DNA of 64,000 nucleotides from Blastocladiella emersonii ATCC 22665 (GCA_025594325.1 JANHCV010000005.1:1736001-1800000); one strand, 5' to 3'; shown: positions 1,637 through 34,250, counted from the stretch's first letter. Notes: generated by a model from the letters alone, not told the origin. Translations and numbers: made by a program.

Positions 1637-3288
1637 CTACTCGTCGTCATCGTCAAAATCCTCGTCATCATCGTCATCGTCATCGTAATCCTCCTCATCC
1701 TCCTCCTCGTAACGCTCAACCTCCTCCTCTTCTTCCACATGCTGCCCTTGGCGCTGCGCCATCTGCTGCGCCCGCGCGCGGTCGCGCTGGACACTCCGCG
1801 CGTGCTCGATCGCCTGCGCAACCCGCCGCTCCTCGCCGCCACGCACGACGACGACGTACGCGGCGAGCATCGCGATGCCCGCGCCGATCGCGGCGATCGA
1901 CTGGACCGTATCGCGTGACACGGAGGACCGAGACGACGCGACCGCGGTGCGGGCGGCAGTCACGGCGCCGCGGACCGAGTCGGCGACCGCGGTGGTGAAC
2001 GGCGGGAGGTCGCGCTCGACGTGGATGTCGGCGATCCGGGCGACGCGGTACACGCGGTCGAGGTACGTGACGAGCGACGGGAACTCGGTGCGGAGGAGCG
2101 AGGCCAGGGACCGCGGGCCGAGCGGGGCCGGGGCGGGGATGCCGCGGACGGGAGTCTCGGCTTCTGCCACCGGGGTTTCGTCGGCAGAGTCGCCGGCGAG
2201 GATCGGGTAGTAGTGCAGCGCGAGGTGGCCGAACACGACGGCGTCGACGGACGTGGGCACCTCGCCGGCCATGAACTCGTTGTCGGCGAGGTACGAGGCG
2301 AGGGTGCCGTAGACGTAGCGCGCGAGCCCCAGGATCTCGTCGAGCGACCACGTGCACTCGTCGTCCTCGAGCGAGATGGAGGGGGGCTTGAAGGTGCCCG
2401 GCTGCGCCATGGGTTTCCCGTTGACGCTGCGCTGGTTGGGGAGCGAGGCGTCGGGCGTGATGCCGGTCGACGTCGCGGACACGACGCTCGGCGCAGGGAG
2501 GAGGATGTCCTCCTCGTCGATAACGCCGTCCTCGCGCACGGCGGGCAGCGCGACGGGGGTCCGCGTGCCGACGCCGACGGTCGACGCGTTGGTCGATGCG
2601 TCCGAGACGCGGCGGCGCGACGGCGTCGAGCCCGACGACGCGGACGAGCTGCGGGTGCGCGCCGTCTCAGCCGCGGACGACACGGGCGTCGGCCCAACCG
2701 CCGCCGAGCTCGTCAGCCGCACGGTCGGCCGGTCGGGCGTGAGGAGCATCGACGACCAGTCGCGCCGCTCATTCAGCCGCGCCACCACCCGCCGGCGGAC
2801 ACGACGCGTGTGGATCCAGCGCGGGACGAGCGAGAGGAGCGGGCGGAACCGGTCGGCGGTGGTCTTTGCGTTTTCGGGGTGGACGAACCACGCGTACGCG
2901 AGAATGTCGTTCAGCTTGTCGTCGAGCAGGGCGCGCAGGGCGCGCGCGTCGGCGAGGCGCTCCGGGCCGAGCGTCATGTCCAGCATCGAGGCGCGGTCCG
3001 ACTTGCGCGCGAGCACCGCGGCCAGGCCGTGGTACATGGACGTGTCGTCGCGGAGGACGGGGAGCGCGCCCGTCTCGGACAGCGCCGCGTCGTTGGTCTC
3101 CTGCACCGAGAAGCTTGCTTTGCACAGCGAGAGGAAGGTCTGGTTTGGGGGTATGTGTGAGTGGTTGTGATAGAGCAACAGGGCGTAAGAGAGCATACAA
3201 TGGCGCTCAGGCACGCCGGGTCGCACGACGGCAGCGGGCGCAGGGCGGGGCCCTCGAGCGGGCCCCAGGAGTAGACGAGCAGGCCCAT
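1637..3288 (-). CDS. Metaxin/Sam37-like mitochondrial outer-membrane protein (2 exons; intron 3140-3198)
   Basis: Spliced N-terminus MGLLVYSWGP..LPSCDPACLSAI|TFL..SETGALPVL matches the metaxin N-domain. The GST-C-like PTSVDAVVFGHLAL motif is followed by a C-terminal TM helix and an acidic tail. The GTATGC..CAG intron restores the frame. Confidence 0.75.
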
Positions 3289-3589
3289 TCTCGCTAAACA
3301 AGATGCATGGAGTGGCCTCGTGCGAGGTTCTTGGGGGTGACGAGCGGAGGGGAGAGGGAGCCGAGGGATCGGAGGCGATCAACGCAGCCCGAATCCGAAA
3401 GCGTCACCACTTGTCACGTTGCCCGCCCGCCCGCGCGTTCTTTCCTCTGCTCGGTGTGGCGCCGGCGGCAACGCGCTTCTCCCCTTCGCGCCGGTTGACT
3501 TCCCCTCCCTCCCACTTTGCTCATCGCCCCCCCTTGCATGCATCTCGTCCGCGCCGCTGCACCCGCCGCCGCGCCCTGATCCACCCACC

Positions 3590-5551
3590 ATGTCGTTCCA
3601 GTCGCGCCTGCGCGGCCTGGTCGGCGGGGGCAAGGCCGACAAGAACGACAAGCCCGACAAGCACCACAAAAAGGACAAGGACAAGAAGAAGCACGCCAAC
3701 GGCGCCGCTTCCTCGGTCGGAAACCTGCCCGCCGCGTCGAGCGACGAGGCCCACCCGCAGTCGCACCTCGGCGCATCGAGCCCGAACCTCCTCCACGCCG
3801 GCGTCGACCTGCCCATCACGGCCGACGTAAACGCGGCGACGGCGTCGGTCGCGAGCCGCGCCAACTCGGTCGATCCACTGGCCGCCGACAGCGGTCCTGC
3901 GTCGGCGGCGGCGTCGCCCGCCCTCGCAAACCACCCGCTCGACCGCCACACGTCACCGCCGCCGCCCCCGCCACCACTCTCTCTCGACGACCACGCGGCC
4001 GCCGGCGCGCACACGCGCGCCAGTACGCCGTCGCTCGCTGGGAGCGCCGAGTCGCTGACGGCTGCAGCGGCCGCCGCCTCGGACGCGGCGCACCCGCCGC
4101 TCCCCGCGGTCGAGGTCGACGGCAAGGCGCCCGCCGCTGCGCCCGCCAAAGAGGGCAAGCCAGGCAAAGAGCCCAAGGAGCCCAAAGACAAGCACGGCAA
4201 GGGCAAGCTGTCCAAGTGGAAGGACATGGCGATCCAAAAGTCGGAAAAGTGGATGGTCAAGGCCTCGGAGATGCGCCACCACGACGACCCCAAGCACGCC
4301 CACCACCGCGGCGGCAAGAAGGGCGGCCTCGAAGAGCACGCCGTCGCGCAGCGCGTCTTCTGCGCGCCGCTCGAGCTCGCCGTGGCCGCGTCGCAGATCG
4401 ACGAGACGTGCCCGCTGCCCGCGGTCGTGATCCGGTGCATCGAGTACCTCGAGGGCCGCGGCATGTACGAGGTCGGCCTGTACCGGATCCCCGGTTCCAC
4501 GTCGACCGTGACCAAGCTCAAGGGCGTGTACGACCACGGCGTGGACCTCGACCTGTTCCTCGAGGACCCGCCCGTCGACCCGCACGCCGTGGCGACGCTG
4601 CTGAAGCTGTTTCTGCGCGAGATGCCCGAGAACCTCTTGGCCGACCACCTGCCGCACTTCACGCACCTGGTCGCCACCGAGCGCGACCCGCTCCCGCTCC
4701 TCGCCGCGCTCGCCCGCCAGCTGCCCCTGCCCAACTACTACCTCCTCTCGTGGCTGTGCGCGCACCTCGCCCGCCTCGCCTACTACGCCGACGTCAACAA
4801 AATGACCCTCAACAACCTCGCCCTCATCTTCTGCCCGACCCTGCAGCTCGACTCGCAGCTGTTTTCCGTGCTCGTCGAACACTCGGTCGAGCTGTTCCCG
4901 CTCACCGAGGACGGCGCCGTACCCGACGCCATCTACCGCGGTCCTGGGAGTGCACCCCTGGAAGATGACGACGCGCACCCAGCAGAGTACGACGAGTGGG
5001 CCGCGCAGGCCGAGATGCTCGAGCTCGCCGACGGCGGCACTGCTGCTGCCGCCGTGTACTCGCCCGCGACGGCACCGCCCGAATCCCCCAAACCCGAACT
5101 CGAACCGATCACCGACCACCCGCACCGCTCGTCCAGCAACTTTGACCTGCACGCCGAGGAAATCGACCCGTCGCTCCTCGTCAGCGTGCGCGCCAAACGC
5201 GACGCCAACCACCACCACATCGTCGACGTCTCGAGCGAGTCCCCCGCGGCGGCGGCGGCGGGGCTCGACCAGGGCGAGCCCCTGTCGAGCGACCTCGCTG
5301 ACCTCTCTCCCACCACCACCGCCGCGCCGGCGCCCGCGACGGGCGTGCCGCCGCCCCGCCCCGCGTCCGCCCACAGCAACCGGTCCGCGCGCTCCGGCAG
5401 CGGCGAGGACGACGACGACGACGCCACGACGCCAAGACCGCAGGCGGTCGCGGCCGCCGTGGCCGTCGCGACGTCGTCCCCGAAACCCGCGCCGCGCCCG
5501 CTCCCGTCCCCGCCGCCGCCCGACCCGTTCGCCGACCCGAGCGGCGCGTGA
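3590..5551 (+). CDS. RhoGAP-domain protein with low-complexity flanks
   Basis: PLPAVVIRCIEYLEGRGMYEVGLYRIPG (arginine finger present), DPHAVATLLKLFLREMP, NKMTLNNLALIFCPTL. The likely start is ccaccATG at 3590. Confidence 0.9.
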   Translation: MSFQSRLRGLVGGGKADKNDKPDKHHKKDKDKKKHANGAASSVGNLPAASSDEAHPQSHLGASSPNLLHAGVDLPITADVNAATASVASRANSVDPLAADSGPASAAASPALANHPLDRHTSPPPPPPPLSLDDHAAAGAHTRASTPSLAGSAESLTAAAAAASDAAHPPLPAVEVDGKAPAAAPAKEGKPGKEPKEPKDKHGKGKLSKWKDMAIQKSEKWMVKASEMRHHDDPKHAHHRGGKKGGLEEHAVAQRVFCAPLELAVAASQIDETCPLPAVVIRCIEYLEGRGMYEVGLYRIPGSTSTVTKLKGVYDHGVDLDLFLEDPPVDPHAVATLLKLFLREMPENLLADHLPHFTHLVATERDPLPLLAALARQLPLPNYYLLSWLCAHLARLAYYADVNKMTLNNLALIFCPTLQLDSQLFSVLVEHSVELFPLTEDGAVPDAIYRGPGSAPLEDDDAHPAEYDEWAAQAEMLELADGGTAAAAVYSPATAPPESPKPELEPITDHPHRSSSNFDLHAEEIDPSLLVSVRAKRDANHHHIVDVSSESPAAAAAGLDQGEPLSSDLADLSPTTTAAPAPATGVPPPRPASAHSNRSARSGSGEDDDDDATTPRPQAVAAAVAVATSSPKPAPRPLPSPPPPDPFADPSGA

Positions 5552-5813: not shown

Positions 5814-7141
5814 ATGGCAGCAAGCTTCTTCATGAAGGCCGGCAAGGCCAAGTCCGCGGGCAGCGGGGACGCCAAGCAGGCGCCCGCGCAGCAGCCGTGG
5901 ATCGAGAAATAGTACTTGGGGGTTTGATCGTGTACTTCATCGACCTCGAGCTTACGGGCTGCGGATGTGTAGCCGGCCAAACTCAATCAACGACATCTCG
6001 TCGCAGGGCCAGGTCACGCAGGTTCTCCGCCGGACGATCGAGTCCAAGAACGTACGCCTGACGTGACTGTTTGCTGAAGGGGAAGAGCAGCTGACCCGAG
6101 GATGTGTAGCTCCCGCACCTGCTCTTCTACGGGCCGCCCGGGACCGGCAAGACGAGCACCATCCTCGCGCTGTCCAAGGAGCTGTTCGGGTACGCCCTCT
6201 CGCACGCACGCTCTACCCCGGCGACTACTCACCGCGCGCCCACGTAGCCCCGACCTGTACCGCTCGCGCATCCTCGAGCTGAACGCGTCGGACGAGCGCG
6301 GAATCGCCGTGGTGCGCGAAAAGGTCAAAAACTTCGCCAAGACCGTGGTCTCGACGGTGCCCGCCGACTCGGGGTACCCGGTCCCGCCCTACAAGATCAT
6401 CATCCTCGACGAGGCCGACTCCATGACCCCGGACGCCCAGGCCGCGCTGCGCCGCGTCATGGAAAACTACTCGAACGTGACCCGGTTCTGCCTCATCTGC
6501 AACTACGTCACCCGCATCATCGAGCCCCTCGCGTCGCGGTGCGCCAAGTTCCGGTTCACTGCCCTCGAGGCGGGCGAGGTGAGTGCCCGGCTCGCGCATA
6601 TCGCCGCGGCGGAGGGGGTGCAGGTCGATGACGAGGTACGTTTCTGGGCTCGTATCCGTGTTGATCGTGGAAACTGATGTTCGTGATCGTGTAGGCCCTC
6701 GACGCCATGATGCGCGTGTCCGAGGGCGACATGCGCAAGGCCATCATGCTGCTGCAGTCCGCGAGCCGGCTCGTCGGCTCCTCGGGCGCCGTGACCAGCG
6801 CCATCGTCCACGACATTGCCGGCGTCGTCCCGACCGCCACCATCCGCTCCCTCGCCGCCCTGTGGCACGCGAAACCCGCCGCGACCTACGCCGCCGTGTC
6901 GGGCGCCATCACCAACCTCGTCGCCGACGGATGGTCCGCGAACCAGATCACCCATCAGCTGTACGCGCTGCTCCTCGACGATGTCGAGTTGACGTCGGTC
7001 CAGAAGGCTAAGATGGCGGCGGTGTTTGGGCGCGTCGACCATTGCCTCGTCGGAGGTGCTGACGAGACGCTCCAGCTCATGGATCTCGTCCTGGAGACGT
7101 GTTTCATCGCCGCGACGGCGCCCGTCGGGTCCGCGGCGTAG
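5814..7141 (+). CDS. RFC2: Replication factor C small subunit (yeast Rfc2 / human RFC4 type), 5 exons
   Basis: Spliced PWIEKY|[19 protein letters not shown] (Walker A), [24 protein letters not shown] (Walker B), SRCAKFRF. Four GTAC..TAG introns restore the frame. Confidence 0.92.
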
Positions 7142-8747
7142 TGGGCGTGACGAGTAGAATACACGGCTGTTTTGGTTTTGTGCTCCAGACTTTCAATCTG
7201 TTCCGGTCTTGAACAGCGCGCTCACGGGCGCTTGTACACACACTTCCACGCGCTGAATCCAGGAGCGAACAAGGCCACCATGGTCGCCGACGACTCTCGG
7301 CGCTGCGAGGGAGAACAACGGAGGAACGAAACGGTCACGCTGACATGAGCCGCGCGGTTGGCGGTTCCAAAGCAAGCCGTCAGCCTCGCCCTCGGTTCGC
7401 GCTCCCCACCACTTGCACATGCATCCAATGTTGACTGATCCACGCACCACAACTTGCTGCAATGTTTATTCTGCCGCCGCGCCGCTGTTCTGGCGCCGTG
7501 TGCGCCTGGTCATGACGAGGTTTGGATCGTTGAGTGTCAAACAACTTGATCGCCGCGAGGTGATGTAAGGCCGACGAGAATGCACAGCTCTTGCCACTTC
7601 CCGTCGACTTCAGTCGAGCTTTGGGTACGCTTTCGTTGTTGCGTGTCGCAAGCCGCAAGCCGTCGGTAGCTCATGGGGCGGTGATGCTCGGTTTCGCCAG
7701 GTTCCGGGGCTTAGGCGCCTAGGATTCGACAGCGACATCAAGGGTCCCACCGCTTTCTTGCCGCGTCGACACTTGCTTGACGGTCGTGGGCGACTTCATG
7801 ACGCTCGCCGCCAGGGAAAGCACAAACTACATGCATCGCAAACGTACGGCTTATCCTGCCCGTCGCCCTCACTGCGCTCGCATCATTTAACGCTTTGCTA
7901 ACTCAACAGGCATACTCGACAATTGATAGGTTCGGTTGTGCGGGACCGCAGACGTTTATCGCTTTCTACGGTTCCGAAGCATGGTTCACAAACCATTAGC
8001 ACAATAAAACGCGAGCACAGCGGCGCGCGAGCCAGAGCATGCAAAACGCATCGGCATCGCGCTGAACTGGCAGAAACTGCAGCTACTACGCCATCAGCAT
8101 CGCCAATCACGTCAAACCCGCAGGGTCATCACTCCAAATGAACAGGTACGCTGCGCCCCAGCTCCTTGAGCCGCTGCGGGCCGACGTGAACGGAATCTCA
8201 CCCCTCGATTCGTCTTCGCCCAGACTCGTCCGAATCCATCAAGCCCGGTCCAGGATCTCGCGCACGCGTCGGCCTTCCTTCCCGCTCGACCGCGTCGCTC
8301 GCTCGCTGCGGCGGCTCCCGTGGGCGTGTCCTCGTGCGTGTCCTAGTCGACCGCCCGCTATGCGCGCGAGCCCTGATAACCCGGGCGGAGGCTGTGGGCG
8401 CACGGGATGTCGTTGAGGGCGGGAACGGGCCATTGGGCGCGTGCGCGGGGCCGTGAATCGGTCCAGATTGGGATTTGGGATCAAGCGGTTCATGGTCGGC
8501 GGAACGGGTGTCGAGGATCCGTGATAGATGCTCGGTTTTGCTCGCTTCGCGCAAATGAATGGTTCGAGTCGAGTGAATCTCTCTTGGTCACTGGCCACGA
8601 CCACGAGCCAAGCGCGACGGTGGCCAGTGTGCTTGCTGCGTTGAGCAAGCCGATGTTAACTCATCGCGAAATCGCACAGTCACAGCTCCTAGCTTTTAGT
8701 CGACATATATACACCCTTCAAGAACACGAGATCCAAAGTCACAGCGA

Positions 8748-22520: not shown

Positions 22521-22720
22521 ATTGCGCAAAGTTATTCCATGTGCTGAGCATCAGTAGGGATGAGGTGTGCAAGTCGAGCCGACCCGAGGCGCGGCGAAGG
22601 CAGACATCCTGCCTCACCGCGATGTGAGTGGCAGATTAGTGGCGTGTTGTGGCAAACGCCACGGCCGCTCAACTTTCGCGACCCGGGGTCACGCCGATCT
22701 GCTCTCCCCCACTCGCAACC

Positions 22721-24260
22721 ATGAAGGCAAAAAAGAAGGCTAGGAAGCCCGCAACTTGCGGCAATGCATCGCCCACCACTAGAGATCACGCTATTTTGGA
22801 CGAGCGACCTGTGGCGTCGATCCCGCCGATGCTGACATGTCGCGCTACGAACCGCGGCAACACCGTCTCTTGGTACCATCCATTCCGCCGGTTCCCTCCA
22901 CGCGACCTCCTTCTGTACCACGACCCTTGCACGCGTACCGAGCTGAACGCGCTCCTCTGCGGCTGCGGCGACCTAGCCGAAGTTGCTCGGACCGTGTGCG
23001 AGGCGGCGAGCAAGGGCGCCACGGCGACGCTCTCATTTACTCTCAACGACTGGAACCCCGAGATCCTCGCGCGAAACCTGCTTATTCTTCACGCCATCGC
23101 TTCCGCATCTCCAGCCGATATCGAGGCGGACACGCTTGCCCGCCGCGTCGGCCAGCTGTGGTACTCGCCGGTACTTGATCCCGAAGCTCGTGATTTTTGG
23201 AATGCCCAGATGCGCGCTTGTATCGAAACTGACTGGCTCGATGTTGCGCCGCACGCATCGCTCCGCGTCATCAACAACGCGACACTTGGCGAGCTACGCT
23301 GCTGCTGGCGCGCCTGGCTTGATGTGGGCTGGTCCATCGACACGCTCCTCAAGAAGCGGGCCCAGTACATCGAGAAGTCGAGTCTCATGACCGAGCCCAC
23401 CACCGACGCTCAGCTCTCGACGAGCGCGGCCATAGCTGTCAACAAGTCAACTCTCAGTTTCCCGGTGTCTTCAAAACGGCTGATCTTTCGCGCATCACTT
23501 GTAACCTTGACCGCCTCATGTCGTCCGGTGCCTTCACGCAGGCAGCCTCGCCTGTTGTGAGCTCAACGTTTCTGCTCCGCTCAGCCGATGGTGGCGCATA
23601 TTATGCCGTCGATTTCAACACGTTTCCATCCAATGCCTTTGACTTCATTCTTGAGCAAGAGCTTCCTGAGGATACCATGCTCTCAAGGTTTCGGCAATGG
23701 GTCAAGGCGCTCCACGATGGCCTGAGTAGCGACAACTCCAATCCGCGTGTCCGAGTGGCCTTGATTCACGGCCACGCGGTCACGGCCATGGAGCAGCTCA
23801 CAGCCGACCCCACCATGCGGTTTGACGTTGTGGACACGAACAATCTCATGGACGCGTGCGGCCTGCTCAGCATCCTCAACCACGGATCGGCGCTCCTTCG
23901 CCACACTGACGATTCTCGTGATCGCGCTCGCTTGCTCGCATACTCGCGACTTGACTGCGCCGAGGAGCTGCGCGATTACAACGAATACTTGCTGGGAAAG
24001 ACGGGACTTGACTACGGTGCATTTCCAGCCTTCTTTGGTGTTTCTCTTGACGAAAAACCAACTCCCTGCGAGCCAGCAACGTGGCACAACCGCTTCACCT
24101 TGAGTCTCCTTCACCTTGAAAAAGAACCTGTCACTTACCTCACTTTTACCAAACTTCCGCACCCGACTGTGCCAACGGCGCTGCTCGGATCTTAACTTTT
24201 GACGGCGAGCCTGCAGGCGTGTGTCCAGTTTCACGTCAATCTTCAGGACCAAAGTACCTA
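22721..24260 (+). pseudogene. 5' half of a DUF4470-type gene, interrupted by the transposon at 24261
   Basis: LLCGCGDLAEVART..SFTLNDWNPEILARNLLIL matches the DUF4470 N-terminal motif. There is a frameshift near 23520 and a stop at 24193. Confidence 0.65.
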
Positions 24261-24295
24261 CACCCATTTTCACTTCCGATGAGACAGTCAGCGAC
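24261..24295 (+). repeat. Left terminal inverted repeat (35 bp)
   Basis: CACCCATTTTCACTTCCGATGAGACAGTCAGCGAC. Confidence 0.95.
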
Positions 24296-24299
24296 CAGA

Positions 24300-24980
24300 A
24301 CGCGACTAAATTGCGACTAAACCGCGACTGAACTGCAACTAAACCTCGACTGAACCGCGACTGAACCTCAACTAAACCGCGACAGAACCATGACCAAACC
24401 AAGACCAAACCGTGACTGAACCTCACTAAACCTCGACTAAACCTCGACTAAACTCAGACTAAACCTCGACTAAACTCAGACTAAACCGTGACTGAAACTC
24501 AACTGAACCATGACTGAACCACGAGTAAACCTAGAGTAAACCTAGAGTAAATCTAGAGTAAATCTAAACTCAACCAGTACTGAACTCAGAGTAAACCTCG
24601 AGCAAACCGGAAACAGAATTCTATTCGACTTGAGTCAGACTATGAGCAGACCCTGAAACTTCCACATCAACCCCAAAGTAGATTCAGACTGAACCCAAAG
24701 TAAACTCAAACTGAACTGGAACTAAACTAAAATCAAACTCGATCAAAAGCTGACCAGACCTGGACCAAACGCAGACTAAACTGAAACCAAAACCAGACTA
24801 AACGCAGACCAAACGCAAACTAGACTCGGACTATACGCAAACTAGACTCAGACCAGACTGAAATTGAATGAAGCCAGCGCCGAGACAACTCGGAGCAAAC
24901 CTGAATATGACCTGAGTGGACTGAAAGCAGACTGAAAGCAGACTTGGACCAAAACCAGACCAGAACGTGACCAGACAGTC
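24300..24980 (+). repeat. Left subterminal array of ~10-11-bp units (ACTAAACC[GT]CG / ACTGAACC / AGACTAAA variants)
   Basis: Dozens of degenerate tandem units immediately inside the left TIR. Confidence 0.9.
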
Positions 24981-24981
24981 T

Positions 24982-25625
24982 GCTCCCATTTCACTTATTT
25001 CACTCCCCTGCTTAATAACTCCCAAAGAACAACTCAAGAGACCTCCATGGCTTCTCGCGTAGTAGTAGATTCCGTCGAGAAAATACGCGATATCGCAAGG
25101 GTTGGGCACCTGAGGTCAGCTACCCGCCACAAGGCCAGCCTGCCTACACCCCATGTATCTCACTGCCCTGCTTGATAACGCCCAACGCACAGCTCAGAAG
25201 ACCTTTATAAAATTACGCGTAGTAGTAGATTCCATTGCGAAATTATTTGATATCGCAAAGGGAAAGACACGCAATGTCAGCTGCGTGCCACAAGCACGAT
25301 CTGCCCTTTCCCCCCATATTTCACTTTCCTTTTTAACACCACCCAACTCTCTTCTCAGGAGCCTTAAAGAGCACTGCAGTTAGTAGTAGATTCCGCTCAG
25401 AAGTTACGCGATATCGCAACGAGGTGAGCACGCGAGGTTAGTTACGCGTCACAAGGCAGTCCCGCTCAGACCCCACTTTTTTCTCTTTCTTGCTTGGTGT
25501 CGTACAACTCACAGCTTAGAGAATCTCTAAAGCCTTGCGAGAAGTAGTAGATTCCGCCGAGAGGTCGCGCGATAACGCAAAGGGGTGAGCACGCGAGGTA
25601 GTTACGCGACGCGGGCCAGGCTGGC
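24982..25625 (+). repeat. Four diverged tandem copies of a ~161-bp unit
   Basis: The core AGTAGTAGATTCC recurs at 25061, 25221, 25382 and 25543, each followed by similar GCGATATCGCAA..GCAC..CACAAG sequence. Confidence 0.85.
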
Positions 25626-26450
25626 TTGCCACGCTGCGAATATCGATGGACCACTCGAGCGCAAGGCTTCGGCAGCATGCTTGGCAACCCAGTAAGAGCG
25701 CGCCCGAGTGTCCATCACGTATCCTCAGACGAATTGTTTGAGCTGACCATGAGCGGGCCAAACGTGCAAGGGTGCAGTCAAGTCTGCGCTCAGCGGCGTG
25801 CCCATAAAGTAGTTGCCTGGCCCATTTTACTGCGCGGAATCGGCCAAGCTCACTGAAAAGCCGTGAGGGCGCGATCTACGGGGACCGTGGCAGCGCGCCA
25901 CGAGCCCCGCTCCTTGCAAGGGCAGCGACAAAAGGCGAGTCGTGGTCGTGCTTCGGGTTGGGCACCACTTGTTGCAAGAACTCAAGACAATGACCTTCCT
26001 CTCAAGCCATCGTTTGGGCTGCCGCGGCGGTGGCTCTACCCGCTACGTGCACGCCAACAACGCTGCCCCACAGTGTGGCGACGGGTCGGGGCGTTCGGGG
26101 CGTGGGACCGCTCTCCGCGGCGTAAAGGTCTGTGCCAACGGCCCATAAACAGAATGCATCAAGTTACATGGGCATAAGATTCATGAGAACAGGTATTTAT
26201 GGATGTCCGCGGTCGCTTGGAGGAGCGGGGCAGGGAGCGGGGCTCGGCGCTCGTTTCGTTTCAGCCGCCGGCTCGGTCGCGTGCACTTGAGCCACGCGCG
26301 GGACACGGCGTGCCGACCTCGACCCCGGCGTCGCTCCCAAACACCGCATCTCGCGGCCCGCTCACTCCGTGCATCGGCGTAACCATCTCAATAGCAGCTC
26401 GCTTGGCCGTCCCACCCGCCGCTCCCTTCGCTCTGTCCGACTTCCCTGCC

Positions 26451-27140
26451 ATGTCTTAGAACAAGCATCTGCTGCGCCTGCAACTCGCGGCATGTAACAT
26501 GGTCTTGAACGATGGAATGTCGGTGCGCGAGGTCGGGAACAAACTTCTCTGCAGCCACTCTACGATTTCGCGCTGGGTGGTCGCTTACAGGGCGGGTGGA
26601 GTCGCTGCGTTTGAGCCCGTCCCGCGTCCGCCGCGCGAAACCAAGCTCGACGCCGACGACGATGAGGTGCGTCGCGCTCCACGAGGTATCCGCCGCGTCG
26701 GGCACGGTGCTCATCTTCAACCCGCGCCCCTGCCCCTGCAATCTAGTTTGTGCGCGCTGCCATCACCAGCACCCCGTGGCTCACCCTACGCGACCTTTCC
26801 GAGCTGCTGCGCGCGGAGCGCAACAAGTCGGTCTCCGTGTCGACGCTCTCGAGGCTTCTCGACCGCCTTGGCTTCTCGAAGAAGGTGGTCAAGTCGCGCG
26901 GCGCCAACTACAACGAGGAGGCGCGCGCCGCCTGGCGCCAGTACGTCGAAACCGCTGGCTTCAGGGCCGACCAGCTTGTCTTCTGCGACGAGTGCGGCAT
27001 CCAGCCGACAGCGGCCAACCACCGCTTCGCGTGGAGCGAGACAGGGGTCCCCGCCGTCATTGTGCAGCCGCGCGCGCCCACGAGCACGCGTGTCAACCTC
27101 GTTGCAGCCATTTCCACGTTGGGGCCCCTCCTCGCGCACG
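26451..27140 (+). pseudogene. IS630/Tc1-mariner-type transposase, intron-containing, 3'-truncated
   Basis: HTH (MSVREVGNKLLCSHSTISRW), second HTH (TLRDL..SVSVSTLSRLLDRLGFSKK) and first catalytic motif LVFCDE, then NLVAAIS. A GT-AG intron 26667-26746 joins the frames. Codon 3 is a stop, and no second or third acidic motif is seen. Confidence 0.8.
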
Positions 27141-27960
27141 CCGCGCCGTTGACGCAGACGCGGTTGACGCAGGCGACCGCAGGGCCGGCGGCTTGCGCGA
27201 CGACGTTGGACCAGGAATACGGCGAGTAGCAGGCTGGCGACTCGAGCTTGCGCGCGCGGGCTCGTCAAGCTGCTCGTACTCGTCGTGGTCGTGGTCATCA
27301 TCTCCATCGCTCGCCTCCTCACCACGGTCAGCGCCAGCGCCAGCGTTGCTTTCCAGCTCCGAAAGCGTCGAGTCGCCGTCGTTGTTGTCGACAGGGTGAT
27401 GGAGGGCGGGCGCCGTAGATGCGCCGAGTGGAACCGAGGACAAACTAGACTCGCGGCGCACGAGAGGGAGTGAGTTGTCACGAAGACAGGGTGGTGCGCC
27501 AGCGAGTCTGCGTACCAAGCAGCTGAGTACTCCTTGTCGCACGTCGAGCACATGTTCACGGCGACCTTGCTTGGACTAATGATGCCGAACACCGTGTTGA
27601 GGTGCTTGAACAGCGTGGTACCGTTGGGTTTCGACTTGAGAAAAGCGCGAGCACCGGCCGGCATCGTCTTGGTAGTGCCGGGCCAAAATTCAATGGCTAC
27701 GCGCGGAAGCAAGGGGCAAGCGCGTTAGTTGCAGCGCGACGGCGGCCAAGCTGGATGCACGTACTCTTCTGCCCAGGCGGCGGAAGCAGCATACCGCTGC
27801 AGAAAGGATCGCGGCAGTCCCCTCGCCGCCCATGAGGCAGATGCCGCAGCTGAAGCAGCCAGTGGGGCCGACTCGAAGCGCCTTTTTCGAGCGCCGGACG
27901 TTCATGGCGAGCACCGCAGCGGGTAGGTCGTCAAGTTCGTACGTCGGCATGGCGGAGGGT
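27140..27960 (-). pseudogene. Cys-cluster (CxC5-like) fragment of the kind found N-terminal to KDZ transposases
   Basis: WPPSRCN*RACPLL...TLFKHLNTVFG..NMCSTCDKEYSAAWY resembles the CxC5 pattern (P..C..C...T..G...C..C...Y...Y). It has stops and frameshifts, and no KDZ core is seen. Confidence 0.42.
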
Positions 27961-28289
27961 GGCCTGCCGTTCCAGCGCCGACGCGCGACCAACAGCAAAG
28001 GAGGGGGAGGAGGAAGGGCGAGGACGGCGGTGACTCGGCGCGCGGGTTGGGTTGCTGGAGGTGTGAATGGTGCGGTTGCAACACGGCGGCCGAGAGTGGT
28101 GGTTGAGCAGGAGCAGGAGCAGGCGCTGCTCGAATGCGGGAGAGAGGACGGGCAGAGGAGGTCGGAGGTCGAAGTGGAGCCAAGCCGCAGGCGAGCGGGA
28201 AGGCCGTGGCGGTGGCGGTGCGCGCGCGTCGCCTCAGCGTGGGTGGGCATTTTCAGCTCGCCGCGCCGCCCGAAAGCGCGCCGCCACAC

Positions 28290-29080
28290 GCAAAGCAGGG
28301 GACCAAGGACAGTAATGCATCGAGTGGGCAACGGGATGCGCGGCCGACCCCGCGCAGTTGAACGGGTAGAGCAGCCACCGGTACTCGCCGTCGAGCTTGA
28401 AGTTGGCTGCGCCTGCGGTCGTCGGCGCCGCGGGCCAATTGGAGTCGGGCACGACGTGGACGAACGTCTGGAAGTCTGTCACACTCACGGCGTGGTACCG
28501 ACCGAGGCCCATACCCGGTTCCACGGGATGCAGGGCGAGCGCCTGCACGGGAAAGTCCTTGCACGTCGCGGTGCTGCCCGGCGCGTCGTTCTGGACGCGG
28601 ATCTGTTTGACGATGGCCACGTCGTGCTCGGTGCCGTTGTGCGTGGAGTGCAGCGCGTCAGCCAGCTTCCCGACGCGGTACTTCTTGTCCGACGTGAGAT
28701 ACTACCGTACGCGAGATAGCAGATGTTAGCGACCGAACGATTCGGGTATGAGCACAGCCAGCAGCGTACCATGACCCAGTCCGTGTGCGACTTGCCGTGG
28801 GTTGGGAACTGACACTTGCCCGTGAGCTGCTTGTTGCGGAACCCGCCGAGCGAAAAGGCCTCGAACGAGATCGCGCCTTGGACATGGAGAACTTCACGTG
28901 CCGCGGGTCGAGAGCGTCAGTTTCTTGTGCTTGCGATACAGATCGCGCGCACACGGGGTACCTTGACGTCGTCGGGACCCAGCAGCGGGTTGTCGGCCTC
29001 TCGCTGCGCCGAGCGTCCGGAACCCACTTGTGCGCTGCTCCCAGAATGCGGTCGTTCATGAGCTCAAGCGGATGCTCGAA
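28290..29080 (-). pseudogene. Relic resembling the C-terminal region of Plavaka/CMC(EnSpm)-type transposases
   Basis: Fragments QFPTHGKSHTDWVMVR and HDVAIVKQ...YHAVSVTDFQTFVHVVPD...WLLYPFN recall the D-x-V-x-V and V-H-V-V-P-D motifs of that region. Multiple frameshifts. Confidence 0.35.
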
Positions 29081-30239
29081 CAACGCCTGAGAATCAGGGC
29101 AAACATCCAGTCGGCGCTGATGCGCGGATCAACGTTCAGTTGAACTCCCGGCGCGTGAAAATCTTGAGCTCGACGGGTGACGACATTGAGGTCAGGAGCC
29201 TTTAAGGGCAATCACACGGATTCGACATCTCCAGGGACGGTGTAAGTAGAGCTCGACACTTTGAGTTGGTTGCATAGAGTCAGTGGATGGTTTGAATGGT
29301 ACGTCGAGCGGTGAGGGAGGCGAAGGACGCGAAGGTCACGCCACGTGACGCGTTCGACTTTTGCCGATCGCTCTTGAGCGCGCGCGTTCGCCGCGGATGG
29401 CTGCGGCTCCCGCCGAACCGCCAAGTACTCAACTCACCCCTCTATCACCATGAACACGACGCATCCACCCCCTCCGCATCGCATGCGGCTCTCGTCTGTC
29501 TGTCGCCCGCGCCGCGGCGGCGCCCGTGTCGTGAGGCCGCCTTCGCCGCCTCGCTCGCCATGCCAGAGTCGTGTCCGCGCCCTCCACGCTCGCCTAAGAC
29601 GACGAACCGACCCCCGAGACGTGCCCGGGGCCACCAAGGAGGCGTACGCCGCCGCTGCGGCGGTGCATCCGTGTCGTGCTGAGTCGCCGCGAGCGCGCGT
29701 ATTCCGTCCACTCATCCGCCCCACTTCCGCCCTTCCCCTCGACACTCGTCGACCTCGCCACGCGCGGGACCGCTGCCGATCGTCCTCCGCGGCGGATTGG
29801 CTCGGTTCCGCCTGCCATCACCCCCTTATCACTCGCCGCCTTGAACACGTCGTTCGAACCACGCTGACCCGTGTCTTTTCCCACCTCAGTAGTCCAGATC
29901 TCCGCCCACCGAGCGCTCGTGCTGACCAGTGCCAAGCGCGCCTCGTGTGACACGCGATCGGCCGTCTCGGCGACGCGTCCATGGCCACGCAGCGGACTCG
30001 ACCGGGCTGTTCGACAAGGGCCTCGCCAAGCGCGTGCACGGCCGAGTTCGGCAGGGTGTGCGCGTGTATCGCTGAGGCTACGGTGCGACCCGCGTTCTGA
30101 CGCGTCCTCGGTGGTGTAGCGACCACGTTCCTCGCCGTTGTGATTAAGGCCGCCAAGCTGCTCCGCGATGCGGTACGCTTTCTCACTCGCTGTGGGCGTT
30201 TGCGACGCTCGGACCTCGTGGCCGTCGTCGCCCGCGTGC

Positions 30240-30620
30240 CCGTGGTGCCGTCAAGGCCGAGATCGGCTCGACCACCGACTGCATTGCCATGGTCACCAAG
30301 GACACGTCCACGACGGCCATCAAGACCTCGAACAGCGTCAACAACGGCACTGACCATGACCATTGACTCTGACGTGCTGTTCCTCGGCCTCGCCAAGGCG
30401 ATCAAGGTCAAGTACCGCGCGATTGAGGGCAACTTCGGTCACGGTGCGTTCCCGACCTGGTTGGCTGCAATGGACGCGCACCTTGAGCACCTTGCTGACG
30501 CACACACACCTCCCGCTGCAGATCAAGCTGTCGGGCGCTGGCGCCGAGATCGACAAGTCCAAGTTCCTCGACTCGCTGTCGTGCGCGGACAAGTGGGACT
30601 GAGCGACCATGACCTCGCAG
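30240..30620 (+). pseudogene. Possible Ty1/copia gag-like relic
   Basis: MDAHLEHLADAH..LQIKLSGAGAEIDKSKFLDSL resembles the copia gag pattern (M..HL......L...G..I......L.SL). It is frameshifted and has a stop. Confidence 0.3.
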
Positions 30621-30937
30621 TACGTCTCTCACGCACGATCATCTCCCCCGCCCGGCTTTGCTGACCTTACGTCCCTCACCACCAGGGCGACGGCTGTCGG
30701 CGGCGCAAAAGTCCAAGTTCGATCTGCTGCGACGGCCGGCGACCACAGCCGTTGAGAGTTCAGGGATCGTTCGCGACGACGAAGTAGTGCGAGGAGGTGG
30801 ATCTCGGTCGCCGTGTACACGAGAAGACGAGAAGACGAGAAGACGGCGCGGCGCGACCACGGAACGTAACCTTCCGCGGCAGAGGTTCCCGATGGTGGCG
30901 GCAGCACAAACACTAGAGAATAGATCCGCGGCCACGA

Positions 30938-31334
30938 CTGGATCACGACCGCGAACCGACCCGACGCGGCGAAGAGGCAGAAGGTCCAGCACAACGAGGG
31001 TCAGATATATGAACAGTACGCGAGGGATTTCCACGATCGAGAGGGGAGGGAGAGCGAACACGGCGACGGCAGCGGCGTCGGTGTAGAGATGGAGAACGGG
31101 TGAGAGGCGGGAAGCGCGGGGTGACGACGATCACGGCCAGCGCGGCCAGAGAGACGGGCGAGAGAGCGAGGATGGCGGGAAGAGCGAAATGGTAGAGCAG
31201 GGCGACGAGGGACAGGGCACCGCGGTGACGAGCGGAGCGAGACTGGGCGAAGAGCTTGATGTAGACAGACCTGGATCACGACCGCGAACCGACCCGACGC
31301 GGCGAAGAGGCAGAAGGTCCAGCACAACGAGGGT
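30938..31334. repeat. Perfect 64-bp direct repeat (30938-31001 and 31271-31334)
   Basis: CTGGATCACGACCGCGAACC...CAGCACAACGAGGGT is identical at both positions. Confidence 0.9.
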
Positions 31335-32334
31335 GCTGACCAACGCCAGGGCGCGGGCGGCGGCCGGTACTTATCGTGGTCGTGGGCGAGGCGAGGCCGC
31401 TGCTGGCGGAGGCGGGCGAGGGGCGCCGAGCACTGCGGTGCGGCAGCGACGATCGAGTCGAACAGGATGGGCAGATGATCTTGGGACACGGCGCGAGCGG
31501 GCCGAGCGGGTTGGGGCACACGGCGCGGGATCATGGGGCGAGAAGCGCGCGAGCACGCGAGTTGAGGGTCGGTACACGGGCGGGGACGCAGCGCGTGATG
31601 CGCCGAGTGGCACGGCGGGTGAACACGGCCGAGATGAGGAACACGGGGTAGCGGCGGAACGGGGCCGGGGCGCGCGAGAAGGCGCGATCGGGTGGTCGGC
31701 GGCGCCACATCACGTGCGATATGCGAGACAGCGTGCGAGACAGAAAAAAGAGAGAGGAGGAAGCGTGTAGACAGGGAGCGAGCCACCCACTCACACCGTC
31801 GCCAGCGTCAAGTTTGAGATCAAGTCGCTCAACATCAAGGAGTGGTAGCGGCGGCGGTGGTGGCCGCGGACGAGCTCGGGCCGCGAGCGCCACACAGGCG
31901 CGGCGGTGGCCGCGCGTGGCGGCTTACTATGATTATTCTAGCGCTTTTATTCGAATGGGTCTAACGAAATGCCTATCAGAAGAAGCACGTGATTCATTAT
32001 TGAGGCGCATCGCGTCTCGCTCCGCTGACCCCAACGCGACCTCTTAGGAAAGAGTGGCGTAGCACATTGCCTGTGTCTGTGCGCGCTCCAAGTCCTGACT
32101 CCGCCTCACATCGCCCGCAAACTCTTGCGCAACCCCACATGGCCGGGAGCTGTGGTGGCAACTGAGAGCAGCGCTAGCGGTGGGGAGCTTGGGTTCCCGC
32201 GCGTATGGTTACGCAATTCATGTTCGCATCGTGTAACCGTGGGTGGTTACAAGCCATTACCTCAAGGATCATTAAGCAGGAAAGAGAAAAATATGGAGTT
32301 CACGATGTGCCGTCTGGTCGTGGTTTGATTGTGG

Positions 32335-32930
32335 TCTGCTGCAGGTTCAGTCGCGGTTCAGTCGCTGTTCAGTCGCGTTCAGTCGCGGTTTACTCCGAGT
32401 TCAGTCGCTGTTCAGTCGCGGTTCAGTCACGGTTTAGTCGAGGTTTTGTGGAGGTTCAGTCACGGTTTAGTCGAGGTTTAGTCGAGGTTTAGTCACGGTT
32501 TAGTAGCGGTTCAGTCGCGTTTTAGTCGCGGTTTAGTCGCAGTTTAGTCGCGGTTTAGTCGCGGTTTAGTCGCGGTTCAGTCGCAGTTTGGTCGCGGTTT
32601 ACTTCAGGTTTGGTCTTGGTTTAGTCGAGGTTTAGTCGAGTTCTGGTCGCGGTTTAGTCGAGGTTTAGTCGAGTTCTGGCCGCGGTTTACTTCAGGTTTG
32701 GTCTTGGTTTGGTCACAGTTCAGTCAAGGTTTAGTCGCGGTTTACTCCGAGTTCAGTCTGAGTTCAGTCGAGGTTTAGTTGAGGTTCAGTCACGGTTTAA
32801 TCAAGATTTTGTTGAGGTTTAGTCAAGGTTCAGTCGAGGTTTAGTCACGGTTCAATTGAAATTTAGTCAGTGTCTGATCTGAGTCTGATGCGGGTTTGGT
32901 CCGAGTCTAGTCAGGGTTTACTCATGGGTT
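32335..32930 (-). repeat. Right subterminal array, inverted relative to the left array
   Basis: Tandem GGTTTAGTCG[AC] / GGTTCAGTC units, the reverse complement of the left units. Confidence 0.9.
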
Positions 32931-32932
32931 TA

Positions 32933-32967
32933 GTCGCTGACTGTCTCATCGGAAGTGAAAATGGGTG
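32933..32967 (-). repeat. Right terminal inverted repeat (35 bp)
   Basis: GTCGCTGACTGTCTCATCGGAAGTGAAAATGGGTG followed by TA. Confidence 0.95.
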
Positions 32968-34250
32968 TATCATCATTACCTCACTGTACCATGTCCGTCA
33001 AACTAACCAGTTGTTTTGGCGCTCTGTAGTTTATCATTGGATTTCACCCGTGTTCATTCCCAAACTTGTTTCCTTTGCACTTGCTGCCGGGCGACTGGTC
33101 GTAACGGATTCCAAGCTTGACGCTTCGCCATTGTGGCCCAACCTCGCCAACTTCACACGCGCGCTGCTTAAATCCTTTGAAGGTGAGGGGTGTGAACACG
33201 AAGTGCAGAGTTCAGCTTCCATGTATGGTTTTCGCCAGCTGGGCGAGAGCGGTGGGGTTTGTTCCGTCGAACTCGAGATTTCTGCTCAACAAGCCACCTG
33301 GCCTCCGACTTTCCTAGTTCTTGGCGTGGTGCGAGGCGGTTCGACTGTTTGGATTGACAATATCTTTGCCGAACCGGCTCGTGGCGACCCTTCGCGCGTG
33401 CGTGTTGTAGCCATCGGTTCCGCGTCGCTGTTTGAGCTTGCGCCCAAAACCATCAAGCTTGGCGTGTATCGGCAGCGCTATTTGGCCAGCTTAGACGCTC
33501 CCGAACGTGAGCTTATTGACGATCAGCTCCTTCCACTCTCAGCTGCGACCAGCACGCGATATTTGACAGGTCAGTTTGCTTCCGTGCTTCGCGGCTTGAT
33601 CCAATCACAGCCGCCGCCGCCTTGCTCATCGTCTAAAAATCCCAGCGCGTGGCCACTTTCGGTACTTCACGTGAACGAAATGGAGGGTGCAATCGAGGTG
33701 CTTGCCCATACCTCTTCCTCGATGCCCAAGGTTGAGTCCTTGAGCGAAGATGAGGCAGCCAGCGAGCTTGGTGCAGCGGTCTTGAAATTCCGCAGCGGCG
33801 CTCGTCAGAAAATGCGCTTTACCACGCCGGTGCTTCCCGTTGGGACTATCAAAACTCTCGCTGACTCGAAGAGTCATGTTCTCGTCACATTTACGCGTCT
33901 CGTGGGTTACGCCTCGAAGTTTGGGCTCGCTCCTTCGACGCCTCGCGTTGGACGCCGCGTGGCCGTTTCGCCTGACAGCCCGCTCATACAGCACTTTATT
34001 CGCGCGGCCATCTGCACCAGCTCGGACCTGATCAACGTGTTACACCCGCCAGCGTCGGGCGCCGTGTGTCGCGCAACGCCACATGAGCTGGCCGGCCGAA
34101 TTCTGCCCTCGTTTTCTCCTCCACACTATATCCGCTCGCTATAATCGCCACGTATTTGCTACAATCGCTCAGAGCCCCAACCTCACATCCGCTTGCTCGG
34201 CTGCAAGCAAGGCGTTAGCCACCAGTACCATCCCCACGTCGCACTATAGG
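32968..34250 (+). pseudogene. 3' half of the DUF4470-type gene, ending in a decayed MYND-like finger
   Basis: SPVFIPKLVSFALAAGRLVVTDS aligns with TPAFGVKAIAYAMASRRLVWTGS of the minus-strand paralog. After the stop at 34144 the frame reads ICYNR..RLLGCKQ. Confidence 0.65.

Follow-up and report, generated by a model that had tools for sequence, protein, structure and literature searches.

Structure of the locus and ends of the element

The window analyzed here is a 64-kb stretch of contig 17 (positions 1736001-1800000) from the assembly of Blastocladiella emersonii ATCC 22665, which comprises 32.65 Mb in 21 contigs. It contains a transposable element of 8,707 bp (window positions 24261-32967) that separates two parts of a DUF4470-family gene and carries the 5' portion of a transposase gene. 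We are confident that this element, which has lost internal sequence, is a non-autonomous member of an unusually large, low-copy family of the Tc1/mariner-IS630 (ITm) superfamily, inserted at a TA dinucleotide inside the DUF4470-family gene.

The element is bounded by perfectly complementary 35-bp terminal inverted repeats (TIRs) at 24261-24295 (plus strand, beginning with CACCCATTTTCA) and 32933-32967 (minus strand), each of which abuts a TA target-site duplication (24259-24260 and 32968-32969). These ends, and the mirrored subterminal arrays described below, had been recognized correctly in an earlier reading of the window made without database searches (the sequence-only reading). The genome-wide TIR search which that reading had proposed returned seven exact 35-bp matches in the 32.65-Mb genome, forming three pairs and one solo end, and the reversed TIR, used as a control, had no match genome-wide. 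The paired copies are located on contig 5 (C5; 11,212 bp), in the window (8,707 bp) and on contig 20 (C20; 11,088 bp, an inverted pair), while the solo right end, also on contig 20, belongs to a truncated remnant. When target sites were tabulated, TA adjoined every end of the three full copies as well as the solo end, and all flanks were different. This combination rules out an artefact of assembly as well as a local inversion, and it shows that the TA duplication characterizes the family instead of being a coincidence at a single site, as expected of the TIR transposon with TA duplication that had been proposed. No match to the exact TIR pattern of the family was found in metagenome contigs.

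All seven 35-bp ends are identical, although the unique sequence of the copies differs by 2-5%, at which level roughly 5 substitutions would be expected in the 245 bp of ends. This suggests that the termini have been under selection for mobility.

Transposase gene

The transposase gene is encoded on the plus strand. Exon 1 (26451-26666) specifies a helix-turn-helix (HTH) region matching HTH_28/HTH_29 and is interrupted by a TAG stop at codon 3 (26457-26459), the N-terminus reading MS-stop-NKHLL in the window and MSQNKHLL in C5. It is followed by an 80-nt intron (26667-26746; GTGCGT...CTAG), which has a counterpart at the equal position in the sister element described below and at which the NCBI gene model H9P43_005235 splices (between DADDDE and FVRAAI); this model matches the window transposase at 97-100%. 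Exon 2 (26747-27148) encodes HTH_33, the second half of a bipartite N-terminal HTH region, together with a weak match to HTH_Tnp_Tc3_2 and the first ~50 profile positions of DDE_3. At that point it is cut by a deletion, and the first catalytic Asp, in the motif DECG, is the only residue of the triad that the window copy keeps.

In C5, an extra 2.48 kb at the 27148/27149 breakpoint extends the frame across DDE_3 positions 73-135. The C5 gene comprises three exons with Pfam matches to HTH_28/29, HTH_33 and DDE_3 (PF13358; profile positions 1-77 and 73-135), and its spliced product is predicted to be ~324 aa long, compared with 300-340 aa in relatives. A nonsense mutation in this gene was considered and rejected, as the stop falls within a second intron (75 nt; GTACGT...CTGTAG) which, if translated, would add 24-25 residues that no homolog has, and which is conserved in the sister family. 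Both introns are canonical, and one is confirmed by the NCBI gene model. Homology searches were run exon by exon, and exon translations were concatenated only for the tree.

The Asp of DECG, the Asp of DNASFHH and the Glu of NPIE did not vary across an alignment that included Tc1-like proteins of Puccinia and IS630 proteins of bacteria. The second Asp and the Glu are separated by 35 residues (DD35E) in both the window family (D191 and E227) and the sister family, a spacing one residue longer than in the aligned relatives and different from the DD34E of Tc1 proper. At the second catalytic position, the C5 gene has Asn instead of Asp; the ancestral Asp is retained in the solo remnant. This remnant (contig 20:1675310-1677521; L013:2311-4522), annotated in part as H9P43_006958, begins precisely at the splice acceptor of exon 2 and is also cut on its 3' side, where transposase codon ~266 is joined to the right arm by a large deletion. 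Copies with an intact transposase had been suggested as something to look for, and C5 answers to this in the length of its gene but not in its second catalytic residue. Given the Asn in C5, the remnant cut on both sides and the stop and deletion in the window, no family copy in the assembly looks enzymatically competent.

Sister family and classification

A sister element of 5,584 bp was found at contig 20:899226-904809 (L014:4226-9809). It has perfect 25-bp TIRs, each reading CAGCCATTTTCAG..GAGACAGGAC after the flanking TA, and its transposase starts with an ATG 300 bp from the end of the element. Over the terminal 12 bp, the sister and window families differ at one position, and both families have a GAGACAG block; beyond 12 bp the TIRs diverge. 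The pattern TA+CAsCCATTTTCA occurs 10 times in the genome, always at ends of the window and sister families, and a control pattern did not occur at all. The sister transposase is 31-44% identical to that of the window family, has its two introns at the same positions and the same DD35E spacing, and retains open segments with D, D and E; in a maximum-likelihood tree, it groups with the window family with 99/98 support. Among the members of this clade in the genome, the sister element is perhaps the only one that could be autonomous. It also contains subterminal motifs of the GCAAGC type over ~100 bp, as well as ~4 kb of extra sequence in which tandem repeats of 48-144 bp and long open reading frames (ORFs) occur. 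These extra ORFs had no Pfam match, leaving a cargo-gene reading of them unsupported, and a tblastx comparison of the two families showed conservation of the transposase alone, with no second gene in common. A further solo end of the sister family is present at contig 2:1166348.

TA duplication is a hallmark of the Tc1/mariner-IS630 superfamily, and here it was observed at the three full copies, the solo end and both ends of the sister element. The DDE_3 gene occupies a constant position and orientation in all copies of the window family, and no inner TIR pair bracketing it was found. Together with the homologous ends of the sister element and the shared introns and DD35E spacing, these observations assign the element to Tc1/mariner-IS630, and membership is given by target site, domains and triad. 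Likewise, PF13358 has been assigned to Tc1/Mariner in fungi (PMC5751038). The element had previously been considered unclassified, with a cognate transposase that could not be assigned from the window copy. Both statements are superseded by the full HTH_28/HTH_33/DDE_3 gene of the C5 sibling and the homologous terminus of the sister element. The sequence-only reading had itself allowed that other copies might clearly belong to a known family, and this is largely what was found (ITm).

An exhaustive HMMER search against 1.84 billion representative sequences yielded 4,997 matches at E≤1e-3. Outside this genome, the best E value was about 1e-25, at 33-38% identity. Proteins of fungi and holomycotans annotated as 'Tc1-like transposase DDE' are the nearest relatives outside the genome, the named top matches being 'Tc1-like transposase DDE domain' proteins of Puccinia graminis and Paraphaeosphaeria minitans and a Lithocolla protein. 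Bacterial IS630 proteins were nearly as close as eukaryotic ones (28-31% identity). The only match among PDB sequences was weak (E 0.56), to the catalytic domain of Sleeping Beauty SB100X (5cr4).

Several observations weigh against an ITm assignment. With ~8 kb of its own sequence and copy sizes of 8.7-11.2 kb, the family is atypically large for Tc1/mariner, and subterminal arrays of 20-50 units are likewise atypical. Instead of a compact element (about 1.3-2.4 kb) with TIRs around a single transposase gene, TIRs were found together with orphan ORFs and long arrays. Compact size is, however, a typical and not a defining trait of the ITm superfamily. Furthermore, no family copy in the assembly encodes a demonstrably functional transposase, and neither excision nor a polymorphic empty site of a window-family element was seen. 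Finally, identity to outside relatives reaches 33-38% at most, and the tree does not fix where the family belongs relative to the Tc1-like proteins of fungi and the IS630 proteins of bacteria.

Subterminal arrays

Tandem arrays with an 11-bp period and opposite polarity follow the TIRs at both ends (24303-24944 and 32344-32920). The left array, delimited at 24296-24950 on the plus strand, is composed of 11-bp units with the core GACTAAACC and has a GC content of 45%; the right array consists of 46 copies, as counted by Tandem Repeats Finder, in reverse orientation (minus strand). When units were counted as matches to the 9-mer core GACTAAACC with at most one mismatch, 21 forward matches were found, at the left end only, and 35 reverse matches, at the right end only, with a dominant spacing of 11 bp. 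The other 55 kb of the window contained three matches in each orientation. The GC content of the arrays is 45-50%, compared with 64% for the window, and mirror symmetry between the two arms could be traced for ~350 bp on the self-comparison diagonal. Next to the left array, on its interior side, about four diverged ~160-bp tandem units are arranged on the plus strand (24982-25625; self-matches at offsets 160, 321 and 482).

The phased 11-bp arrays could be putative auxiliary platforms on which transposase binds at multiple sites, thereby aiding end pairing and synapsis of a very long element. Judged from the sequence pattern, we give this proposal about an even chance. Alternatively, within the same ITm class, the arrays could be neutral, satellite-like expansions of one ancestral subterminal motif produced by replication slippage, which we regard as somewhat improbable. 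The variation in unit number among copies (35, 53 and 48 at the right end, 21-25 at the left) would fit such neutral expansion, as would the 65-85% similarity of the units, the limited extent (~100 bp) and different motif of the subterminal repeats in the sister family, and the plain ~120-bp TIRs of the nearest metagenome relatives. However, both ends of every copy carry arrays with strict mirror polarity, the AAAC core is invariant, and the 11-bp phasing corresponds to about one helical turn. Selection acting on both ends would explain these features more easily than two independent slippage runs.

Internal deletions and mobility

Compared with C5, the window copy has two internal deletions. 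The first (junction 27148/27149) removed 2.48 kb, corresponding to C5 element positions 2889-5372, and with it the second Asp and the Glu of the triad. The second (junction 28337/28338) removed 0.97 kb (C5 element positions 6561-7530) and is common to C20. Indeed, the window and C20 copies have both deletions in common and form one contiguous alignment at 97% identity, while their flanks are different. Over 5,749 aligned columns, divergence was 2.3% between the window and C20 copies, 4.0% between the window and C5 copies and 4.9% between C5 and C20. The substitution spectrum over these columns was balanced, with no mutation bias resembling repeat-induced point mutation.

Owing to the stop at codon 3 and the deletion of the catalytic C-terminus, the window copy is non-autonomous, as it had been judged before its relatives were known. 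As the doubly deleted form occupies two unrelated TA sites, it must have moved after the loss of the catalytic domain, and we infer that this derivative transposed in trans.

The ancestral element would have comprised ~8 kb of its own sequence, with 35-bp TIRs and polar 11-bp arrays of ~650 bp at each end. Besides a three-exon gene for a transposase of ~324 aa (HTH, HTH, DDE_3; DD35E), it would have carried ~3.7 kb of orphan sequence, and the 3.85-kb TIR element would already have been nested in it. The presence of the doubly deleted form at two TA sites suggests that movement most likely took place by Tc1-type cut-and-paste into TA with transposase supplied in trans. The paired N-terminal HTH domains are predicted to bind the terminal 35 bp, which they would recognize, with cleavage predicted for the DD35E domain. 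In this scheme, the window copy is a passive substrate.

The enzyme acting in trans could also have come from elsewhere, if the family is or was cross-mobilized by the sister-family transposase and not by its own. Consistent with this, the sister gene has open segments and an unbroken triad, the terminal 12 bp of the two families differ at a single position, and the sole full-length gene of the window family has lost the second catalytic Asp. We nevertheless consider cross-mobilization quite unlikely, since the two transposases are merely 31-44% identical, the TIRs diverge past 12 bp and the C5 defect may be just recent decay.

Interior of the element

The interior of the window copy had been described as a mosaic of relics resembling IS630/Tc1, CxC5-KDZ, Plavaka/CMC and copia gag. 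The IS630/Tc1 part of this description holds, as it corresponds to the truncated transposase of the element itself. To cover the remainder, the six-frame translation was scanned against Pfam at E≤0.1, in all 99 segments with a length of 52 aa or more. The only transposon-related families found were HTH_28/29/32/33, HTH_Tnp_Tc3_2 and DDE_3, with no match to KDZ, CxC, Transposase_21 or gag. Likewise, the 10 longest interior ORFs contained nothing beyond the HTH and DDE_3 domains, and no CMC-type transposase (Transposase_21) was detected in the ORFs of the C5 copy either. The KDZ, CxC5, Plavaka and copia-gag relics were therefore rejected, and the mosaic is made up of nested insertions instead. 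The cysteine-rich ORF on the minus strand is part of an orphan gene model without homologs.

It is thus very improbable that the element is an unclassified, CMC/EnSpm-related carrier of cargo with an unseen transposase of its own and the IS630/Tc1 gene as one captured relic among several: a terminus starting with CAC and long arrays of subterminal repeats are both classic for CACTA/CMC, and the size of the element is far above that typical of Tc1/mariner, but CMC, KDZ and Transposase_21 signals are absent in any frame, the DDE_3 gene is found at one position in every copy without TIRs of its own, the DDE_3 gene of the sister family is closely surrounded by a homologous TIR, and TA is duplicated without exception. 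The CAC terminus loses its value as a CMC sign, given that the sister element starts with CAG and the nearest outside relatives with CAG after TA.

That foreign transposon material is carried by the element was confirmed. A 5'-truncated copy of an unrelated TIR element of ~3.85 kb (termini CATCGCCGAAACGG) extends on the plus strand from 28338 to 30752 and, as shown by genome comparison, continues with its remainder and right end at 31796-32162. This element lacks a long ORF and is present at at least 12 other loci with 77-92% identity; its target duplication may be 2 bp. As it is whole in the C5 copy, it was acquired before the copies diverged. The 3.85-kb element has GACGCCAG-type subterminal repeats and is non-autonomous, and another copy was seen at L015:3005-7048.

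In the window, the nested element is itself interrupted by a 1,043-bp sequence with TG...CA termini on the plus strand (30753-31795), flanked by a CCGT duplication (30749-30752 and 31796-31799). Relatives of this sequence are dispersed in the genome as at least four full-length and many partial copies, with CCGC/CCGC flanks on contig 2. Its termini, a duplication within the 4-6-bp range and its dispersed copies are those of a long terminal repeat (LTR), and the absence of a gag/pol domain fits a solo LTR. The other two copies of the family lack it and keep its empty site. Full and internally shortened relatives of the LTR were noted on contigs 1, 2, 5, 19 and 20; some of them are paired 5-14 kb apart and may be full retrotransposons.

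C20 contains an independent insert of 3.25 kb in its left array (L009:8092-10000 plus L012:1-1340, contig 20), with TIRs GGGCCCGTTTGG...CCAAACGGGCCC and a TAA duplication, which looks like a PIF/Harbinger element. At least 40 copies of it are present in the genome at 98-99% identity, suggesting very recent activity.

Sequence specific to the family, present in its three copies only, is found on the minus strand at 27149-28337 and includes the first ~222 codons of the orphan gene model H9P43_009017 of the C5 copy. There, the model comprises 411 aa in five exons on the minus strand (L008:4863-6675, contig 5), with a cysteine-rich N-terminus and an acidic, Ser/Pro-rich middle. It had no Pfam match and no homolog among 5.8 billion proteins; its atlas scores (0.81-0.83) were within noise, and no counterpart was found in the sister family. 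H9P43_009017 may represent a genuine accessory gene, or it may be an artefact of gene prediction.

Interrupted DUF4470 gene

The upstream part of the interrupted gene (22640-24258, plus strand) matches DUF4470 (PF14737, E 3e-15), and the downstream part (32970-34141, plus strand) is collinear with a paralog. The flanking ORFs (23323-24192 on the left, 32972-34141 on the right) are likewise collinear in paralogs, where they lie 146-147 bp apart and in one case form a single ORF of 1103 aa. When the empty site was rebuilt in silico by joining the flanks, residues 271-543 of the 1103-aa paralog ended 26 bp before the junction and residues 577-924 started 81 bp after it. The linker across the junction is 106 nt locally and 102 nt in the paralog. 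Since the paralog aligns on both sides of the empty site, the insertion lies in coding sequence.

Rejoining of the host gene across the empty site had been anticipated, and the collinearity with the 1103-aa paralog bears this out. A clean frame, however, is not restored: locally, a TAA interrupts the frame (24193-24195), and close to the junction the frame changes by +1. The flanking DUF4470 gene is now a pseudogene, a state that may have arisen before or after the insertion. The DUF4470 family is hugely expanded in this genome, with more than 130 six-frame matches on contigs 4, 5, 15 and 17-21, many of them clustered on contigs 4 and 5; ORF lengths in the family vary between ~500 and ~1,200 aa, and stops are present in several copies.

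Comparison with known systems

The fungal Tc1-like (DDE_3) elements, including metagenome relatives at L024/L026, resemble the Blastocladiella family in their TA duplication, CA-initial TIRs, a transposase of ~320-340 aa with HTH-HTH-DDE_3 architecture, and the invariant motifs DECG, DNASxH and SPDxNPIE. They differ in that the aligned relatives are DD34E and the relatives for which elements were seen are ~3.5 kb in size, with plain TIRs of ~120 bp (termini CAGCGA following TA in the L024/L026 elements) and an intronless gene, whereas the Blastocladiella family is DD35E and has ~8 kb of its own sequence, 35-bp TIRs, 11-bp arrays of ~650 bp and two introns. Departures from Tc1 proper are thus found in the DD35E spacing, size, introns and end architecture.

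Bacterial IS630 elements have the same Pfam architecture and TA target, and in the tree their proteins and the eukaryotic ones are not cleanly divided. They are ~1.1-1.2 kb in size and intronless, in contrast to the window family with its spliceosomal introns and eukaryotic relatives. The IR/DR group of Tc1 elements, such as Sleeping Beauty, offers a precedent for more than one transposase-binding repeat per long end, with two sites in ~230 bp. The window family, in comparison, has 20-50 phased units, as candidate binding sites, over ~650 bp.

Traveler has been described as a DD35E Tc1/mariner family of vertebrate animals that is close to DD34E/Tc1 (PMC7093834). Compared by spacing only, its distance between Asp and Glu equals that of the window family, and the resemblance may be coincidental. 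The main survey of fungal transposons included Allomyces as the only representative of the Blastocladiomycota and found very few DNA transposons (PMC5751038). Our literature search found nothing specific on blastoclad transposons or on Tc1/mariner elements with subterminal arrays, and DNA transposons of the Blastocladiomycota are almost undescribed.

The Blastocladiella family shows that passenger-carrying elements of 8-11 kb can go together with an enzyme of the Tc1/IS630 type. If the arrays do bind transposase, they would represent a natural example of extended cargo capacity in a superfamily that is used for gene-transfer vectors. For annotation, H9P43_005235 should be treated as a truncated transposase and the flanking DUF4470 gene as a transposon-disrupted pseudogene. 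A more far-reaching, and in our judgment unlikely, proposal is that the two Blastocladiella families form a distinct deep ITm lineage (DD35E, introns, 5.6-11 kb) with convergent CACTA-like ends made of helically phased 11-bp sites and possibly with an accessory orphan-ORF protein, by which long cargo-laden elements would be moved.

With CACTA/En-Spm elements, the window element has CAC-initial termini and long, mirror-oriented arrays of short subterminal repeats in common. The norm for CMC/EnSpm is a CACTA or CACTG terminus and a duplication of 2-4 bp, typically 3 bp, whose sequence is not fixed, whereas the window element starts with CACCC, has an invariant 2-bp TA duplication and encodes no CMC transposase. 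The resemblance is architectural only, the subterminal arrays being the sole CMC-like trait among the criteria examined. CACTA-like ends on an ITm element are a caution against classifying TIR elements by their termini alone. Overall, the element is an odd variant of the Tc1/IS630 type and not a new class.

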